From the IMG/VR virus record IMGVR_UViG_3300028920_000022, positions 394,730 to 458,729 of that record: DNA of 64,000 bases, one strand, 5' to 3'. Each line of letters opens with the position of its first letter. The first letter of the stretch is position 1. Below are positions 1,597-62,373 of the stretch, one piece after another. The position numbers and the translations under genes are program-made. The notes beneath the pieces were generated by a model. The model was not told the DNA's origin. It searched no databases and saw nothing but the letters and a program-made list of their open reading frames with translations.

Positions 1597-1682
1597 TGCG
1601 GGAATGTAGCAAAGGCGGCTAGCCAGTCTCATAAGCTGGCGTCCATTGATCGCGAAGGGTTCGATTCCCTCTCCCGCAACCA
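1597..1682 (+). tRNA. tRNA-Met(CAT) with enlarged variable region and encoded CCA
   Basis: TGCGGGA/TCCCGCA acceptor, CCAGT-CTCATAA-GCTGG anticodon arm, GGTTCGATTCC T-arm, ACCA end. Confidence 0.85.
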
Positions 1683-23642: not shown

Positions 23643-24460
23643 TCCTCTCCCTCAATCTCATCACCCATGTTCTGTAACCGTACTATCGCTTCCCGATAGT
23701 CCGTATCAAAAAACGCCACAGATATGAATAACTCCTTCAAATGAGCTAAACTTAATCCCTCGGAATCTTTTGACCACACATCAATGGGAAGTTGACTAAA
23801 ATCCTCAGATTGATTTATTAAATGCTGTAAATAAGCAAATCTCACCTTTTCACTAGGATACCCAATCTCTACACACCGATCAAATCTGCTCGGTCTGTCC
23901 TTTATTCGCCCAGCTAATGCCCCAATGTTGTTCGTTGTAGCTAAAAACACTACCTTGTCATATCCACCAATTCCATCCAACATGTTGAGAATGTCAGATT
24001 CGTCATAATACTCCAGCAAATGATCTATATCTTCCATCACTACTACTATGGGAGTCTCCGGTTGAACATTCCTAAATGACCCCATGTTGGCGGTAAAAAC
24101 ATTATAATTTTTGCAAAGAACCCCTATTCCTCCAGCCGCCACTACATCATTTAATATCATCTTGATCGCACAGCTTTTGCCAGTCCCGTGCGGTCCATAA
24201 AATAAAATCCCCCGCCTAAATGTAAAATTGTTTCGCCTGAATAATTCTTCTTTTTTCCAAAATGACGATATTTCTTTTACTATTTCATCGATTATTGAAT
24301 CTTCAAATTTAACTAAATCTGTGTTTTCTTCAATTTTAGATAGATAAGCCTCTCCCATCCCGTTGGCAGACGGTAAGTATATCCCAGATGGCAGATTCTC
24401 AAATTTAGTGTGCTCTTGCCTGGGAAAAAAATCTATGTTGTTCTTGGTCTGCCAGTGCAT
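23639..24460 (-). CDS. AAA+ ATPase
   Basis: GILFYGPHGTGKS, VVMEDID, LNMLDG, ATTN, DRPSRFDR. Confidence 0.92.
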   Translation of the reverse strand: MHWQTKNNIDFFPRQEHTKFENLPSGIYLPSANGMGEAYLSKIEENTDLVKFEDSIIDEIVKEISSFWKKEELFRRNNFTFRRGILFYGPHGTGKSCAIKMILNDVVAAGGIGVLCKNYNVFTANMGSFRNVQPETPIVVVMEDIDHLLEYYDESDILNMLDGIGGYDKVVFLATTNNIGALAGRIKDRPSRFDRCVEIGYPSEKVRFAYLQHLINQSEDFSQLPIDVWSKDSEGLSLAHLKELFISVAFFDTDYREAIVRLQNMGDEIEGEE

Positions 24461-24481
24461 CCTAGTCCCAGCCGAAACGCA

Positions 24482-24511
24482 ATCCTACCACCCACTTCGC
24501 CTTAAAGTCAA
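24482..24511 (-). promoter_or_regulatory. Sigma70-like promoter for the AAA ATPase
   Basis: TTGACT-18 nt-TAGGAT on the minus strand. Confidence 0.45.
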
Positions 24512-24626
24512 GCACAAATTAATACTCTTTTTCTTAGCTTCCATTTCCATAATACATTAGATGTGTCAACCGTTTTTATATGGGATGTGTCAATCGTTCC
24601 TATTACTTTCCCATTAACTATAATGT

Positions 24627-25331
24627 CTACTTTGTCGGAGATTTCCATGTTCTGCAACTCCAATTTTCCGGAACTATAAATTCAGGATCCTGCTCCGCTA
24701 TCTTCTTTACAAAATTGTCCACATGCCGACATCGACGAATTGCTTTCTTGCCTACCCAATATTTGCCGTTCCGCCGTGGTGAACATTTTCCCCTGCCATA
24801 AGAATCTATCCATACCGCAGGAGGTCCCCCACAATCCCTCTTGTATTTCTCCAATAAAGCATAAGCAAATGCTACATTCGTTGCTGGATCCCTTAGTTTC
24901 TTTAATGTTAAGCCCGCCCAAGGTCTCCCAATCTGTGGATCCATCTCTTCCCATGTTTTAACCCAGCTAGGAGCCATTCTACTAATCTGCATCGGTCCAA
25001 TGCTCTGCCCTACACTTTTGGGTTTTAAACTTATATTACAGGGTCCTGGACGGGTACATGATAAATATCCTCCCACTACCCTCGGATCCCCGTCCCTCCC
25101 ATGCCGACGATACCTCGATTCCTCAAATGACATCGCCGCCAATATCGTCGGATCTATGTACTCGTTTACTAATTTCCCACGAGATCCAGTCTCACTGAAA
25201 TATTCCCCCAACGCTTGAACATCTTCTCGGTGTTGGATATGAATCTTTTTCTGAGAATGTTCAATTGTGGGAGCTTCTTTGTACAATAAAGAAAACATGC
25301 ATAAAATTAATAGTTTAGTGTAGGTTATCAT
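24627..25331 (-). CDS. Exported lytic transglycosylase (SLT-like)
   Basis: LAAMSFEESRY, GPMQI, LRDPATNVAFAY; signal peptide. Confidence 0.75.
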   Translation of the reverse strand: MITYTKLLILCMFSLLYKEAPTIEHSQKKIHIQHREDVQALGEYFSETGSRGKLVNEYIDPTILAAMSFEESRYRRHGRDGDPRVVGGYLSCTRPGPCNISLKPKSVGQSIGPMQISRMAPSWVKTWEEMDPQIGRPWAGLTLKKLRDPATNVAFAYALLEKYKRDCGGPPAVWIDSYGRGKCSPRRNGKYWVGKKAIRRCRHVDNFVKKIAEQDPEFIVPENWSCRTWKSPTK

Positions 25332-43474: not shown

Positions 43475-43476
43475 TG

Positions 43477-43549
43477 AGCACCTGGAGGGAATCGAACCCT
43501 CAGCTGGACCTTGGAAGGGTCCCATGTTAGTCCATTACACCACAGATGC
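43477..43549 (-). tRNA. tRNA-Gly(TCC)
   Basis: GCATCTG/CAGGTGC acceptor, GGACC-CTTCCAA-GGTCC, GAGGG-TTCGATT-CCCTC. Confidence 0.95.
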
Positions 43550-43612: not shown

Positions 43613-43696
43613 TTATGCACATATCAGAGTTCTTTTGAGGATAATAGAAACCTGTAATGTTTGTTGATAATAATCATAGTAAGGGAATGGGGGCAT
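43613..43696 (-). CDS. Mini-protein, ICA C-terminal family (27 aa; not in track)
   Basis: MPPFPYYDYYQQTLQVSIILKRTLICA*. Confidence 0.45.
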   Translation of the reverse strand: MPPFPYYDYYQQTLQVSIILKRTLICA

Positions 43697-43755
43697 AAAT
43701 ACGTACACAACCAATAATAATTGGTGGGTTTAGGTTTCTCGACAAAACCGTACTA

Positions 43756-43944
43756 TTATACCTGTAGATCTTCCGTTTTTTCTTCTTGAGCAGAGGCTAT
43801 TTTGATTATGCTTTTAGATTTTGCTAAATTGATTATTTTTTCATGGCTACGCTTTAGAACGTCAGTTACGTTATCACAATGAGAATAATCATTAATCAAA
43901 TTATTAACTTTTTCTGCTGCTTCAAAATATTCTTCGGAACTCAT
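43756..43944 (-). CDS. Small hypothetical protein
   Basis: IKIAS motif. Confidence 0.55.
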   Translation of the reverse strand: MSSEEYFEAAEKVNNLINDYSHCDNVTDVLKRSHEKIINLAKSKSIIKIASAQEEKTEDLQV

Positions 43945-43954
43945 AATATGCCCT

Positions 43955-44146
43955 TTATTTCTTTTCTTCCAATTCCCTAGCTTTTACATGTAGTTGTGCC
44001 GCAAGCTCTTTTAGAACTTCTTCAAGGTCTTTTAATCCGCCTTTGGCTTCATATTCTTTAGCTAAATCCCAAACGCGGTCTGCTGCCTCGCGGAAACATT
44101 CGTGTTCGTTTTTATGTCGCATATCATAATGATTTTTTATGCACAA
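43955..44146 (-). CDS. Small hypothetical protein
   Basis: Helical acidic ORF. Confidence 0.55.
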   Translation of the reverse strand: MCIKNHYDMRHKNEHECFREAADRVWDLAKEYEAKGGLKDLEEVLKELAAQLHVKARELEEKK

Positions 44147-44183
44147 ATTATGGTCGTTCTATATAATTTTAGAATTAATTGGG

Positions 44184-44342
44184 TCATGCGCAAATCAAAA
44201 CACGTCGGGGTGGAGTGGCGTTTTTTATAAGACGAAAAATATTAGCGTCTTCCTCTTGCTCTATTTCCCATTTGCAACGCTGAACTAATGTGTCCAATAA
44301 GTTCTTAGGCGCAGATGTGTATGGTACGAGAGAATCTGACAT
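44184..44342 (-). CDS. Mini-protein (52 aa), capsid-helix-like, ICA family (not in track)
   Basis: MSDSLVP...QRCKWEIEQEEDANIFRLIKNATPPRRVLICA*. Confidence 0.6.
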   Translation of the reverse strand: MSDSLVPYTSAPKNLLDTLVQRCKWEIEQEEDANIFRLIKNATPPRRVLICA

Positions 44343-44366
44343 ATTTAATTAGAATCGGTAACGAGG

Positions 44367-44513
44367 TTAAGCACATATATTTGTTGTTCTTTTGTTTCGG
44401 TCGATAATATTGAATCTTCTTCTTTTGACATCTGATATACGAATTGTGGGATTTTGAATTATTTCAAACGATGGAATTTGAACCCGCTTGCCATAAATTT
44501 TGTTTTTACTCAT
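44367..44513 (-). CDS. Mini-protein (48 aa), capsid-fragment-like, ICA family (not in track)
   Basis: MSKNKIYGKRVQIPSFEIIQNPTIRISDVKRRRFNIIDRNKRTTNICA*. Confidence 0.65.
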   Translation of the reverse strand: MSKNKIYGKRVQIPSFEIIQNPTIRISDVKRRRFNIIDRNKRTTNICA

Positions 44514-44533
44514 CCATAATTAGCGGACTGTAA

Positions 44534-44947
44534 CTATTTTTTGCTCGACTTCTTTTTCTTGAGTTTGCTGCTGTTTCTCCAAGTCTTTTTGCCCTCGAAT
44601 TTATCGCGAACTGAGGCGCAGAAAGCTTCTGGGCTATCCATATGCTTTTTCATTTTTTCTACGCACTCGGTAAAAGGATGTTCTTCACCCTTCATCATAG
44701 TACGCGAGTACTGTTTGACGGACTTTTCTTTCCATCCTGGAGGTTTCTTGCTCCAGGGTTTTCTTTTGGCTATTTTAAGGAAATAATCGGCTAAGGCTAA
44801 TATTGCCTTACTCTTTTTTGATGGAAAATGCTTTGTACAATAAAATCCACCAAATTCGTCACATAATGGATCCCCGGATTCACAGGGGTCATACCAATAA
44901 TTAGTTTCTGCTCCACAAATTGTACATTTACCCACAGTTGCCGCCAT
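44534..44947 (-). CDS. Basic hypothetical protein
   Basis: CTIC; YFLKIA motif; HPFTECVEKM...FCA. Confidence 0.6.
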   Translation of the reverse strand: MAATVGKCTICGAETNYWYDPCESGDPLCDEFGGFYCTKHFPSKKSKAILALADYFLKIAKRKPWSKKPPGWKEKSVKQYSRTMMKGEEHPFTECVEKMKKHMDSPEAFCASVRDKFEGKKTWRNSSKLKKKKSSKK

Positions 44948-44977
44948 AAAGAATTAAGAATACACTGAAATGCGGCG

Positions 44978-45247
44978 TTATGCACAAATGGTAGTTTTTC
45001 TCTTCGATCCACAAAAGAAACCGGTAGGAAAATATACCGGTTCCACAACTATAGGCATGTAGTCTCGAAAAATATTCGTTTTTTGTTCTACAAATTCTCC
45101 AAACGGAGTTTTTGTAAGAGTTTCGTTAGAAATTAATATTGGAGCTTTTTCGTAATAATACAACTTCCCATAGTGTTTTTCTTTAGGTTTTAGAAGCAAA
45201 CTAGTTGGCGAAACTACTAGGAGTTGTTGCGGAGGAGTTATAATCAC
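44978..45247 (-). CDS. Hypothetical protein, ICA family
   Basis: Ends KRKTTICA*. Confidence 0.6.
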   Translation of the reverse strand: MIITPPQQLLVVSPTSLLLKPKEKHYGKLYYYEKAPILISNETLTKTPFGEFVEQKTNIFRDYMPIVVEPVYFPTGFFCGSKRKTTICA

Positions 45248-56833: not shown

Positions 56834-56860
56834 AACGATAAATGGACAAAAATTAGTAGG

Positions 56861-56933
56861 CGGGTCCTGCGAGATTTGAACTCGCGTCTAAAAGCTTTAA
56901 AGGCTTTCGCTCTCGCCGCTGAGCTAAGGACCC
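56861..56933 (-). tRNA. Ochre suppressor tRNA (anticodon TTA), Lys-like body
   Basis: GGGTCCT/AGGACCC acceptor, GCTC/GAGC D-stem, AAAGC-CTTTAAA-GCTTT anticodon arm, GCGAG-TTCAAAT-CTCGC T-arm, G73. Confidence 0.92.
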
Positions 56934-59766: not shown

Positions 59767-60279
59767 TTAGAGTATCGTTTTAATTTCCGGCAAATTGCGG
59801 CAGGTTTGTTTATAATCTAAACCATAACCAATCACAAATTTATCTTCAATCGTAAAACCAAGATAATCTATTTTTACTTCTTTCACTGTTTTTGCCGGTT
59901 TATGCAGTAATGAACATAACTTTACGGACTTTGGTTTTCTAGCTGATAGCATATCCAAAAGATATCTGGATGTCAAGCCTGTATCTACTACATCTTCCAC
60001 AATTAACACATGTTCATTTTCTATGGAGAAATTTAGATCGTGTGTAATTTGTACGAGACCACTAGATTTATTATCATCACCATAGCTTTGAACACCCATA
60101 AATCCTATTTTCATCGGTGTTTTTATTTGTCGTGATAAATCAGCCGTAAATATAAAACTACCCTTCAAAATACAAATCAATACTATTGATTTCCCGTCGT
60201 AATCCTTGGTAATCTGTTTGCCTAACTGTTTGATTTTATTACGTATTTTACGTTCTGAAATTAAAGTTTTCATGCGCAA
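59767..60279 (-). CDS. hpt: Hypoxanthine phosphoribosyltransferase
   Basis: ICILKGS.IF.ADL, VLIVEDVVDTGLT, LLHKP, FVIGYGLDY...RNLP. Confidence 0.95.
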   Translation of the reverse strand: MRMKTLISERKIRNKIKQLGKQITKDYDGKSIVLICILKGSFIFTADLSRQIKTPMKIGFMGVQSYGDDNKSSGLVQITHDLNFSIENEHVLIVEDVVDTGLTSRYLLDMLSARKPKSVKLCSLLHKPAKTVKEVKIDYLGFTIEDKFVIGYGLDYKQTCRNLPEIKTIL

Positions 60280-60360
60280 ATTGTAATCCTTCGTGGTCTG
60301 TTCGTTTGTAGCTCATTCAGATAGGCGTATTTGAAAAACATTTCGAAGATATTTTTTGAG

Positions 60361-60489
60361 TCAAGCACAGATTATGGTCCTTCGTGGGTGGTAATATCTA
60401 ATTGTTTGCCAATCATATTGACTCATCCAAATTTTGGAAGATATTAGGGACCAACTATTGATTTCTTTAAATACTTCTTTCTTGTCCAT
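60361..60489 (-). CDS. Mini-protein, ICA family
   Basis: Ends HPRRTIICA*; start uncertain (track start overlaps the MTase). Confidence 0.5.
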   Translation of the reverse strand: MDKKEVFKEINSWSLISSKIWMSQYDWQTIRYYHPRRTIICA

Positions 60490-60532
60490 AACGAATCTTT
60501 TGTGTGAACTTAATGTGACGGTTTTATTTTTG

Positions 60533-61630
60533 TTAGCATAAAACCTTTTTAAAATAGTAAAAGAAACGAGGAAAATCAGATCCGGGTTGTTGTAATGACT
60601 TTTTAATTTTAATGATTTCCAGTTTACCTGCGGTTTTTTCTTCAATCCAGCGTTTGTTAGGATAAGCTAATTTTCTATTACCACTTCCTTTTTGGGGATG
60701 ATCGTTGTTATTATACGTTTCTATCTCAATAATAACAATACCATCAATTTTAACAAGATTACTAACTAATGTAAAAAACTTTTCTTGACTATCTCCAAAA
60801 TAGTGAAACGTGGATGCGCAAAAAACAACATCAAAATTTTCGGAGCTATCAAAATTTAAAGCGTTGCAACATATAAATTTAACATTTTGTTTTCTAAATA
60901 CTCGATTATTTAATCTATTAGCAATACACAAAACATCTGGATTCACATCTATACCTACAATACTGCCCGAAGTCTGCTTGGCAATTTCAAAACAAAAAAA
61001 GCCATTATTACAGCCCACGTCTAAAAATGACTGTCCATCAGTTATTTCTATTTCTGCCAACTGTAATTTCGTTGGTGACATTGAATCACCGCGGTGATTA
61101 AAATCTGTAAATGATTGGTAGTTAATGCCCTTTTTTAATTTAGAAAAATCTATTCGTTTTAAGTCATCATGAGATTTAATACAAGCTTCTGGTATTGTTT
61201 TTTCGTCGTCAGTATGAAAATTAATTAGATTACGTTTATAAACAAGGGTATGTTGTTTTTGGAACTGTAATCTGCATATTTCATTGCACCCTAGTTCTTT
61301 AAGAATTTCAATCAATTCTTTTTCTATAGAAGATATAACGTATCCCTCTATCAAAACATCTACTATGCCTTCGGCTTTCTCGATTCCCTTTTGCAAGATT
61401 TTTTTCGTCACATGCAGATATCTAGTTTTATTCCATCTAAGGCTAGAACAGTGTAGCTGAATGTTTCTAACGAAACCCACCACTTTTTCATATTGAGGAT
61501 CTCTAAAAAAAGTATCCAAACAATATCGTTGTACGTTAGGGTTGTGTTCTTTGTAATAATGAGTCCAAGTTGTTTTCCCAGAATTGGGCATTCCTGCACA
61601 TAAAAACACCCGTAAATATTGAGCTGTCAC
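60533..61630 (-). CDS. P-loop kinase-like domain fused to class I SAM methyltransferase
   Basis: AGMPNSGKTT; FLDVGCNNGFF, GIDVN, FDVVFC.STFHY. Confidence 0.8.
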   Translation of the reverse strand: MTAQYLRVFLCAGMPNSGKTTWTHYYKEHNPNVQRYCLDTFFRDPQYEKVVGFVRNIQLHCSSLRWNKTRYLHVTKKILQKGIEKAEGIVDVLIEGYVISSIEKELIEILKELGCNEICRLQFQKQHTLVYKRNLINFHTDDEKTIPEACIKSHDDLKRIDFSKLKKGINYQSFTDFNHRGDSMSPTKLQLAEIEITDGQSFLDVGCNNGFFCFEIAKQTSGSIVGIDVNPDVLCIANRLNNRVFRKQNVKFICCNALNFDSSENFDVVFCASTFHYFGDSQEKFFTLVSNLVKIDGIVIIEIETYNNNDHPQKGSGNRKLAYPNKRWIEEKTAGKLEIIKIKKSLQQPGSDFPRFFYYFKKVLC

Positions 61631-61761
61631 TGGTATGCCCTATCGCCATATTTCCTAAACAATCTAATCGATAACATTAGTGCTAATGCCTCTGTTTGTT
61701 TACTGGGCTCTAATACTCTTAAAATAATTTAGAATGCAGCAGACGAGAGTAAATTCGTTTT

Positions 61762-61920
61762 TTAGGCACAGATTGTTGTGGTCCTTCTCTTGCCCCAATG
61801 TACATTAGAAAAAGCGGAACCCAGCATTAACATGGCTTTTTGCATCTTAATCAAGTTCTGTATATGGACATTGAGAATCTTTTCTGTGAATTTGTGGTGA
61901 CAAGTTGTTTTTGTTAGCAT
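61762..61920 (-). CDS. Mini-protein, ICA family
   Basis: Ends GKRRTTTICA*; start uncertain. Confidence 0.5.
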   Translation of the reverse strand: MLTKTTCHHKFTEKILNVHIQNLIKMQKAMLMLGSAFSNVHWGKRRTTTICA

Positions 61921-61936
61921 AATGTACAATTTGTGT

Positions 61937-62188
61937 ATGAGAATTTTTGTTACATTTCCTGAGGAAGATTTTGGTAGTGCTACGCTAGAAATACATGCAT
62001 CAACATCTTCTAATGTATTAGAACGATTACCTATAGCTTTGCGGAATATTGGTGTCAAATCTTTCTACGATTATATTTTTCAAAACGGAGATAAACTAAT
62101 TATTCAAGCTAAAATCGTAGACTATGACAAAAATAAACTTTCCTCTACAAAAGCTATAAACATACTAAAATCATTAAGCACAGATTAG
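61937..62188 (+). CDS. Hypothetical protein (opposite strand)
   Basis: Protein-like composition; no clear SD. Confidence 0.4.
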   Translation: MRIFVTFPEEDFGSATLEIHASTSSNVLERLPIALRNIGVKSFYDYIFQNGDKLIIQAKIVDYDKNKLSSTKAINILKSLSTD

Positions 62189-62296
62189 AACTCTATTTGG
62201 AGCGATTTCTATTAGCCCATAATCAACAAGACAATCTAAGAGATTACTAAGAACATCTGTGCAATTCTTTTGGACTATTACATTTCTTACGCACAT
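62174..62296 (-). CDS. Mini-protein (40 aa), ICA family (not in track)
   Basis: MCVRNVIVQKNCTDVLSNLLDCLVDYGLIEIAPNRVLICA*. Confidence 0.55.
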   Translation of the reverse strand: MCVRNVIVQKNCTDVLSNLLDCLVDYGLIEIAPNRVLICA

Positions 62297-62373
62297 ATTA
62301 AAACCCTTTTGGCGGGAACAATGCTAATTTCTATTATTTGAAAATCGTTGGGTATATAATTCCATCCATTCAT
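62287..62373 (-). CDS. Mini-protein (28 aa), ICA family (not in track)
   Basis: MNGWNYIPNDFQIIEISIVPAKRVLICA*; ATGA-coupled to the upstream gene with AAGGA SD. Confidence 0.6.
   Translation of the reverse strand: MNGWNYIPNDFQIIEISIVPAKRVLICA

Follow-up and report, generated by a model that had tools for sequence, protein, structure and literature searches.

The region studied here lies in the last 64 kb (64,000 nucleotides, hereafter the window) of a single 458,729-bp huge-phage contig of 39.5% G+C, assembled from a marine-sediment metagenome. Two micro-ORFs, frag1 and frag2, are located on the minus strand of the window, each with its own ATG and each ending in an Ile-Cys-Ala-stop (ICA) tail. 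They are accompanied by a short middle ORF, a series of small genes and a tRNA gene (Table 1).

Table 1. Features of the capsid-fragment region and of the other ICA-tailed ORFs (window coordinates; MCP, major capsid protein; L004 and L026, contigs of two related phage lineages)
Position	Strand	Feature	Sequence or tail	Observations
44978..45247	minus	89-aa ORF (orf89)	..KRKTTICA-stop	Body not MCP-like; the L004 ortholog ends ..RRSVLICA-stop
44534..44947	minus	137-aa upstream gene		No family match; synteny anchor, 71% identical in L004
44367..44513	minus	frag1, 48-aa micro-ORF	MSKNKIYGKRVQIPSFEIIQNPTIRISDVKRRRFNIIDRNKRTTNICA; tail NKRTTNICA-stop	MCP residues about 121-159 (distal E-loop strand through RRFNIIDR), then the tail; orthologs in L004 and L026 are 60-70% identical
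44305..44376	minus	Middle ORF, 23 aa	MCLTSLPILIKYVRFSRTIHICA	ATG inside the ICA codons of frag1; overlaps the start of frag2 in another frame; counterparts with the same start position and an ICA or ICG end in L004 (27 aa) and L026 (29 aa); interior poorly conserved, translation uncertain
44184..44342	minus	frag2, 52-aa micro-ORF	MSDSLVPYTSAPKNLLDTLVQRCKWEIEQEEDANIFRLIKNATPPRRVLICA; tail ..PPRRVLICA-stop	MCP residues about 153-182 (start of the long "spine" helix, ..VQRCKWEIEQEEDANIFRLI), then the tail
44137..44187	minus	16-aa ORF	MTQLILKLYRTTIICA	Starts at the ATGA overlap with the stop of frag2; an extra tail unit that L004 lacks
43955..44146	minus	63-aa conserved small gene		Directly downstream; TTG start inside the preceding ICA motif; present in all three lineages
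43756..43944	minus	62-aa conserved small gene
43613..43714	minus	ICA-tailed small ORF	..IILKRTLICA-stop	63 nt upstream of tRNA-Gly
43476..43549	minus	tRNA-Gly(UCC)
60270..62373	minus	Second cluster of five ICA-tailed small ORFs		Stops at 60270, 60361, 61762, 62174 and 62287; several chained so that the next start codon lies inside the ICA motif
24508..24663	minus	Isolated ICA-tailed ORF	..RKRVLICA-stop

We first asked whether frag1 and frag2 are related to the capsid protein of the phage itself, a point that a preliminary description had raised and proposed as a check. When the phage genome was searched by tblastn, both micro-ORFs aligned to adjacent segments of one ORF, 185 kb away at genome positions 252721-253740. 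frag1 is 59% identical over 37 aa (E 2e-13, residues about 123-159) and frag2 is 45% identical over 29 aa (E 1e-3, residues about 155-183). This 339-aa protein is the MCP, since it matches PHROG 2522 "major head protein" (phrog_2522, E 1e-78), is 52% identical to gp27 of Bacillus phage G, and hits the solved phage G capsid chain (PDB 6wkk_A) at E 7e-94. More than 1,700 close homologs exist in metagenomes, many on contigs of 300-470 kb. A profile of 120 close MCPs was then searched against all 21,694 open frames of at least 12 codons in the genome and in the related contig L004, and only five were returned: the MCP itself, frag1 (6e-14, profile positions 121-159), frag1 of L004 (1.8e-11), frag2 of L004 (5.5e-5, positions 147-181) and frag2 of the window (0.029, positions 153-182). 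frag1 also hits phrog_2522 directly (E 7e-6), whereas frag2 of the window is marginal when taken alone.

The preliminary observation of two capsid-derived, ICA-tagged mini-ORFs is therefore confirmed. The consensus it quoted (..FEI.SNPT.RI..VK.RRFN.IDR.QQKA.QEIQAQEDAN.F..) matches real MCPs of this clade almost letter for letter, such as those in contigs L012-L017. One correction is needed, because the pieces are not strictly consecutive as had been supposed. They overlap by about 8-14 MCP residues, and a degenerate copy of the RRFNxxDR stretch opens frag2. Together they cover only about 60 of 339 residues (profile positions 121-182 of about 338), with no A-domain and no N-arm, so these pieces cannot form a capsomer and are derivatives of an MCP rather than MCPs.

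The arrangement recalls phage genes that are fractured by split inteins or split by introns or homing endonucleases, in which a gene appears in pieces, each with its own start, and mobile endonucleases are nearby in relatives. However, no Pfam domain was found in any piece, no intein domain is present, and only one residue follows the Cys of the tail. An Rfam search of the window found only tRNAs, with no intron family at E<=1 and no riboswitch. The gap between the pieces is about 110 nt, the pieces overlap in MCP coordinates instead of abutting, they cover under a fifth of the MCP, and nothing MCP-like follows. The locus is thus not an intron- or intein-split capsid gene.

We next examined the tail. 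The pattern ATHTGYGCNTRA occurs 12 times in the window, always on the minus strand, against 0.63 expected (a 19-fold enrichment) and a maximum of 3 in 100 shuffles. There are 16 copies in the whole genome, mostly in two clusters (window 43613-44989 and 60270-62298), with a few elsewhere. In a tally of all 27,628 stop-terminated frames, ICA is far above its one-letter neighbors. Extension upstream gives the peptide consensus (P)[KR]R[VT][LTI]ICA-stop, and frag1 and frag2 each end in an 8-9 residue module [NKY][KR][KRS][VT][LTI]ICA-stop. Arg is encoded by AGA, AGG, CGA and CGT, and Leu by TTA, TTG, CTA and CTG. Tail codons vary synonymously across 24 copies, and in the three codons before ICA the information is concentrated at codon positions 1-2, which is the signature of selection on a peptide. 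The tag, as the preliminary description called it, is a real and recurrent peptide module.

The tag appears to be derived from the C-terminus of the MCP. The phage's own MCP ends ..GNKSTIIGA-stop, and the 120 close MCPs end ..G[RN]KS[VT][VI][IV]GA or a near variant, an extension that is conserved in this clade and lacking in phage G. A position-specific scoring matrix was built only from 22 ICA tails and used to score all 27,612 non-ICA frame ends in the genome. It ranks NKSTIIGA second overall, first when the Cys column is ignored, and first among 791 frames of at least 100 codons (6.5 against 2.8 bits). Codon by codon, the tail of frag1 (AAC AAA AGA ACA ACA AAT ATA TGT GCT TAA) parallels that of the MCP (AAT AAG AGC ACT ATC ATT GGT GCG TAA), and a single G-to-T change turns Gly into Cys. 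Only the last 8 or so residues support this origin. An HMM of the last 45 residues of the MCP, searched against all frames, does not find the ICA ORFs, so that the by-eye resemblance of longer tails (..IIEISIVPAKRVLICA against ..ISEIIGIGIVNPRG..KSTIIGA) is unsupported and is not claimed here.

The tag also caps ORFs whose bodies are unrelated to the MCP, including orf89 and the 60-62 kb cluster. Pfam and PHROG scans of all other ICA-tailed ORFs and their neighbors returned nothing, and tblastn of the other ICA ORFs against the phage's own genome found no paralogous source genes. The tag therefore behaves as a portable module. This raises the possibility that it is a targeting peptide that would dock where the C-terminal strand of the MCP docks, and would bring small proteins, both MCP-derived and unrelated, onto or into the procapsid as capsid-associated accessory proteins. 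Such a role would be analogous to that of encapsulin cargo-loading peptides, short C-terminal peptides shared by otherwise unrelated proteins in a system built on an HK97-fold shell, or to satellite capsid-size redirectors. The Ccm-type redirectors are likewise capsid-protein derivatives encoded outside the head module that could interfere with or modify assembly, but they are near full-length HK97-fold proteins encoded by satellites, whereas the proteins here are 48-52 aa pieces encoded by the phage itself. The clade-specific MCP extension and its match to the tail are in line with the docking reading. On the other hand, the genes lie in an accessory and tRNA block instead of the head module, no docking site is known, the invariant Cys in place of Gly is not explained by simple mimicry, and the GSL-rich encapsulin consensus is unlike [KR]R[VT][LT]ICA. 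A co-fold of the MCP with frag1, the only complex predicted, gave no answer and counts neither for nor against binding. We consider this reading unlikely, although it ranks second among those examined.

Alternatively, the ICA motif could be chiefly a nucleic-acid device, a compact stop-restart cassette in which purine-rich Arg/Lys codons act as the ribosome-binding site, an ATG, GTG or TTG lies inside the ATNTG, and a stop follows. It would couple translation along chains of small ORFs, and the peptides would be incidental. In at least 7 of the 12 window copies the next ORF starts inside the motif or at an ATGA overlap, and several copies carry GAAGGA 8-13 nt upstream of that start. A second gene-end motif in this genome (..[KR][ED]IIE-stop, 73 copies) clearly combines a Shine-Dalgarno sequence with an ATGA overlap. 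However, copies with CGA CGT or TCT CGT have no Shine-Dalgarno-like run, yet keep R-R or S-R at the protein level. The Cys-Ala codons are invariant as amino acids but vary at wobble positions, the downstream ORFs share no reading frame or sequence, and the similarity to the MCP C-terminus is left unexplained. The cassette reading is thus improbable as the main explanation.

Still less likely is that the tail is a C-terminal degradation or processing signal. A hydrophobic residue-Cys-Ala preceded by basic residues bears a general resemblance to ssrA ..LAA or SpoIIAB ..LCN, the tags of the ClpXP/ClpCP type, and would make the micro-proteins short-lived, timed regulators. This resemblance is all that speaks for it. 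No protease or adaptor was identified, and it is the MCP, a stable structural protein, that carries the closest relative of the tail. Lanthipeptide-like, prenylation-like, arbitrium-like and tmRNA-tag-like readings were also considered and do not fit, since there is no consistent Ser/Thr-to-Cys spacing and no signal peptide, and the tail is encoded in each ORF.

To address whether the micro-ORFs are maintained, we compared them among lineages. The upstream 137-aa protein led to a syntenic IMG/VR contig (L004), and a profile hit led to a third lineage (L026). All three share the same order: frag1-ICA, a 23-29-aa middle ORF ending ICA or ICG, frag2-ICA, the 63-aa gene, the 62-aa gene and then tRNA genes. 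L004 and L026 also carry further ICA motifs on the coding strand, 7 in 12 kb of L004 (0.07 expected) and 7 in 2.9 kb of L026. Synonymous differences are saturated (pS 0.64-1.0), whereas non-synonymous ones are not. frag1 has pN of 0.21-0.28 against pS of 0.64-0.80 (pN/pS 0.33-0.41 on raw proportions with saturated pS), and frag2 has pN of 0.30-0.51. frag1 is the best conserved of the four small genes, for example 65% identical between the window and L026 against 52% and 30% for the neighbors. These results indicate that the micro-ORFs are under purifying selection as proteins, and they agree with the preliminary view that the pieces are not simple decay. In L026, frag2 still contains the distal E-loop strand and an intact RRRFHVID before the helix, and is an unsplit piece with one tail (protein P0205). 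The arrangement in the window is thus best read as a tandem pair of tail-tagged MCP pieces, the first of which lost the helix and the second of which lost most of the E-loop.

We also considered whether frag1 and frag2 could be one protein, joined when an ochre-suppressor tRNA reads through TAA. The window encodes a tRNA with anticodon UUA, and the two pieces are in the same frame, separated only by TAA codons, two in the window and one in L004. In L026, however, they are in different frames. Five of the 12 ICA stops are TGA, and the middle-frame ORF, not the read-through frame, is the better conserved one between the pieces. Genome-wide, an ATG lies within 0-12 codons after nearly every in-frame TAA, so the genome shows no TAA reassignment. 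This reading is very unlikely and is largely refuted by L026.

A length-restricted search with frag1 found three 77-84-aa proteins that hold the same MCP segment unsplit. A profile of such fragments was then searched against 1.84 billion representatives and gave 639 hits at E<=1e-3. The best 150 are almost all 52-235 aa (36 are at most 100 aa, 103 are 101-235 aa and only 11 exceed 235 aa), and full MCPs score lower. Members are defined as short ORFs that hold the ..NPT[IV][RK][IL].[DE][VI]K.RRF..ID.. segment, with or without the spine helix, and score above full MCPs with the fragment profile. The window's pair belongs to this family, which we define here, and P0205, unsplit and ICA-tailed, links the two. 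Hundreds of 50%-identity clusters with conserved N- and C-terminal ends make up the family. Many members start MEHP[IL][IV]I.S.GK[IL], a diverged copy of E-loop strand 1 (AVVVSSNGTG in the MCP), and many end ..ALD..GSGN[KN].[EI]. Longer members repeat that strand motif before each MCP piece and, like the window's pair, duplicate RRF..IDR on either side of a linker, which in them is in frame (for example P0128, P0139, P0145 and P0146). In the fragment ORFs fetched as loci, the invariant Glu of ..R[IL][AS]EVKRRRF.., found in more than 140 MCPs, is replaced by Asp or Asn. Among the short representatives Asp predominates but Glu also occurs, and frag1 of L026 has Glu, so that the substitution is not universal. 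In a tree of the shared 80 columns, fragments and MCPs, including that of phage G, are separated by one branch (support 87/84, found in 86% of bootstrap trees), although the alignment is short and has long branches.

In 8 of the 9 independent contigs examined, the fragments lie within a few hundred bases (about 0.5 kb) of tRNA genes, often with tRNA-Ala upstream and tRNA-Gln downstream. These are the window, L004, L026 and the fragment-bearing contigs L006, L007/8, L013, L025 and L029, the only exception being the short contig L030. The family is absent from all 50,697 GenBank phage records. In phage G and LR745208 only the full MCP was found, and megablast of the region against GenBank phages gave no match. 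We found no paper describing the family.

It remains possible that these ORFs are non-functional debris, in which fragments of the MCP gene were scattered by homing endonucleases, introns and illegitimate recombination in a recombination-prone tRNA region and stayed open by chance. The MCP genes of relatives are invaded by inserts of 1.1-1.2 kb, one with a group I intron-like hit. A LAGLIDADG ORF sits 90 nt after the phage's own MCP, and L004 has endonuclease-like ORFs beside the fragments. Architectures differ between phages, and the L006 copy is broken into pieces, which is also what relaxed constraint would produce. Against the reading as translated micro-proteins, which is favored below, no promoter or terminator signal rises above shuffles. 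Neither ATG has a Shine-Dalgarno sequence, although only 45% of long ORFs in this genome do. Among sequencing runs, only DNA metagenomes (marine sediment, marsh and wetland) and no RNA run contained the locus, and the contigs of relatives recovered from them did not cover 44137-44447. Nevertheless, debris is disfavored and improbable, given that start, stop and tail are kept in three lineages with saturated synonymous sites, that frag1 is at least as conserved as its neighbors, that tail codons vary synonymously, and that the family is large with conserved ends.

Taken together, frag1 and frag2 are well supported as micro-genes derived from a duplicated segment of the phage's HK97-fold MCP (Pfam Phage_capsid_4), although their translation is inferred from selection rather than from expression data. 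frag1 keeps the distal E-loop strand and the invariant RRFNxIDR stretch, and frag2 keeps a degenerate copy of that stretch and the first half of the spine helix. The pair is a lineage-specific, split and tail-tagged version of an old and widespread family encoded inside the tRNA gene arrays of phage-G-like huge phages, for which "engineered", the term of the preliminary description, is the wrong word. The interpretation in that description is partly supported, but the proposed roles of the fragments as decoys for capsid-sensing immunity of the CapRel/Lit type or as assembly modulators rest on inference only. The origin from the MCP, the modular tail, the selection, the breadth of the family and the tRNA linkage are shown by our analysis, whereas expression, binding and either function are inferred.

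Our favored but tentative explanation is that the micro-proteins act as soluble mimics of the most conserved surface of unassembled MCP, namely the E-loop base, the spine helix and the C-terminal tail, and would occupy whatever binds that surface. The partner, none being known so far, would be either a host sensor that recognizes a short MCP motif, as Lit and CapRel do, or MCP and procapsid partners themselves. The retained segment is the most conserved stretch of the MCP, and in the HK97 fold the distal E-loop strand and the start of the spine helix are engaged in inter-subunit contacts. An AlphaFold2 model of the phage's MCP from 27 sequences was unusable (pLDDT 38), and only its long helix at 150-187 is consistent with a spine helix. 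In this view, the fixed Gly-to-Cys change in every tail and the Glu-to-Asp/Asn change in most fragments would separate a non-assembling or non-triggering mimic from the real subunit. The fluid architecture, the rapid divergence (long branches in the tree) and the location among accessory genes fit a conflict-type role better than a housekeeping structural one. Sensing of MCPs by short motifs is established for Lit, which responds to the T4 Gol peptide, and for CapRel, and sensing by fold for Avs7/8/10 and Dsr1 (PMC13581612). In the former, a short conserved stretch of an HK97 MCP acts as a separable recognition unit, which is the conceptual basis of the decoy reading. Those motifs, however, act within the full MCP and activate defense, and the decoy reading is made by analogy for a phage with no known host, defense system or sensor.

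A stronger version, which we regard as doubtful though not excluded, is that huge phages related to phage G carry an undescribed class of micro-proteins built from modules of their own MCP, the E-loop strand, the spine helix and the C-terminal tail, kept for long evolutionary periods inside tRNA arrays. These would mimic unassembled capsid protein and disarm host immune sensors that recognize capsid motifs. In the window's lineage the mimic would have been divided into two separately translated peptides, each bearing a Cys-modified copy of the capsid C-terminus.

Gene callers mostly miss or ignore these ORFs, and this case shows that short, "broken-looking" fragments of structural genes can be under selection. 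Capsid proteins are now known to be major triggers of bacterial immunity, and no phage-encoded capsid mimic or free MCP fragment that counters such sensing has been described. The conserved and very widespread family found here gives a concrete, testable candidate for such a mimic. If the micro-proteins instead turn out to modulate assembly, they would be a new kind of self-derived regulator of a T=52-class giant capsid.

In the phage's own genome (locus L001, at genome about 253.8-255.7 kb), a 621-aa ORF with a LAGLIDADG domain (PHROG 'endonuclease', E 2e-43) starts 90 nt after the MCP stop codon, just past a terminator-like hairpin. In two related huge phages (L018 and L023), the full MCP genes are interrupted after residue about 77 by inserts of 1.1-1.2 kb, and L018 has a group I intron hit (42 bits, below the gathering score) ending at the second exon. 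The tRNA region of another related phage (L004) also holds a tmRNA (tag ANDNADLAVAA), a 349-aa ORF with a weak Phage_endo_I match, which is inserted directly upstream of frag1 and is absent from the window, and an HNH endonuclease ORF.

We also observed variation in the architecture of the MCP fragments. The tandem array in L006, a locus of another phage, comprises three or four overlapping MCP-piece ORFs between tRNA-Ala and tRNA-Gln genes, and looks like a broken version of the single 204-aa gene P0128, which has the same neighbours in a 506-kb contig. Some MCP-fragment proteins, such as the metagenomic family members P0127 and P0141, carry a Cys-rich C-terminal extension (..FWCDGCGEPRYKCYCENVCPDCG..) that looks like a zinc ribbon.

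Coordinates of additional features in the window, the genome and related loci
Sequence	Position	Strand	Feature
Window	1597-1682	+	86-nt tRNA-Met call
Window	4563, 4808, 27522, 27886, 28269, 58728, 62370		Gene ends with the IIE-stop motif
Genome	1.6-48 kb		ORFs with the IIE-stop motif
Window	24448-24507	-	G+C-rich 60 nt downstream of the ICA stop at 24508
Window	56859-56933	-	tRNA with anticodon UUA
Window	59767-60279, 60533-61630, 62837-63364		Genes interleaved with the second ICA cluster
L001	7831-9696		LAGLIDADG ORF, outside the window
L004	328-707, 6288-7337, 8137-8808		tmRNA, Phage_endo_I-like ORF, HNH endonuclease ORF
L006	4632-5518		Tandem array of MCP-piece ORFs
L018	1061-2168		Insert in the MCP gene
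L023	2664-3866		Insert in the MCP gene

Within the window, the second ICA cluster is interleaved with a phosphoribosyltransferase (E 8.5e-30), a 365-aa protein with a class I methyltransferase domain, in which a possible N-terminal P-loop-like motif was recognized by eye only, and a weak Macro-domain protein. The 60 nt after the isolated ICA ORF are unusually G+C-rich and look structured (..GGCGAAGTGGGTGGTAGGATTGCGTTTCGGCTGGGACTAGGATGCACTGGC..), but Rfam finds nothing there. The tRNA with anticodon UUA (ochre suppressor) scores 71.5 bits against the Rfam tRNA model, whereas gene boundaries across the genome show no sign that TAA is reassigned. For the tRNA-Met called by ARAGORN, Rfam gives only a weak tRNA-Sec-like hit (26.8 bits) and no ordinary tRNA match at that place.

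A second C-terminal motif was found in the same genome, where 73 ORFs end ..[KR][ED]IIE-stop (ATHATHGARTRA). IIE is the commonest C-terminal tripeptide in the genome (69 ORFs), and the four window members tested have no Pfam match. Most of the ORFs with this ending have an ATGA stop/start overlap, and in the dense block at genome 28-48 kb the next gene often starts MKIGTH.F. This is a very large family of small paralogs with a Shine-Dalgarno sequence embedded in the K/R-E/D codons.
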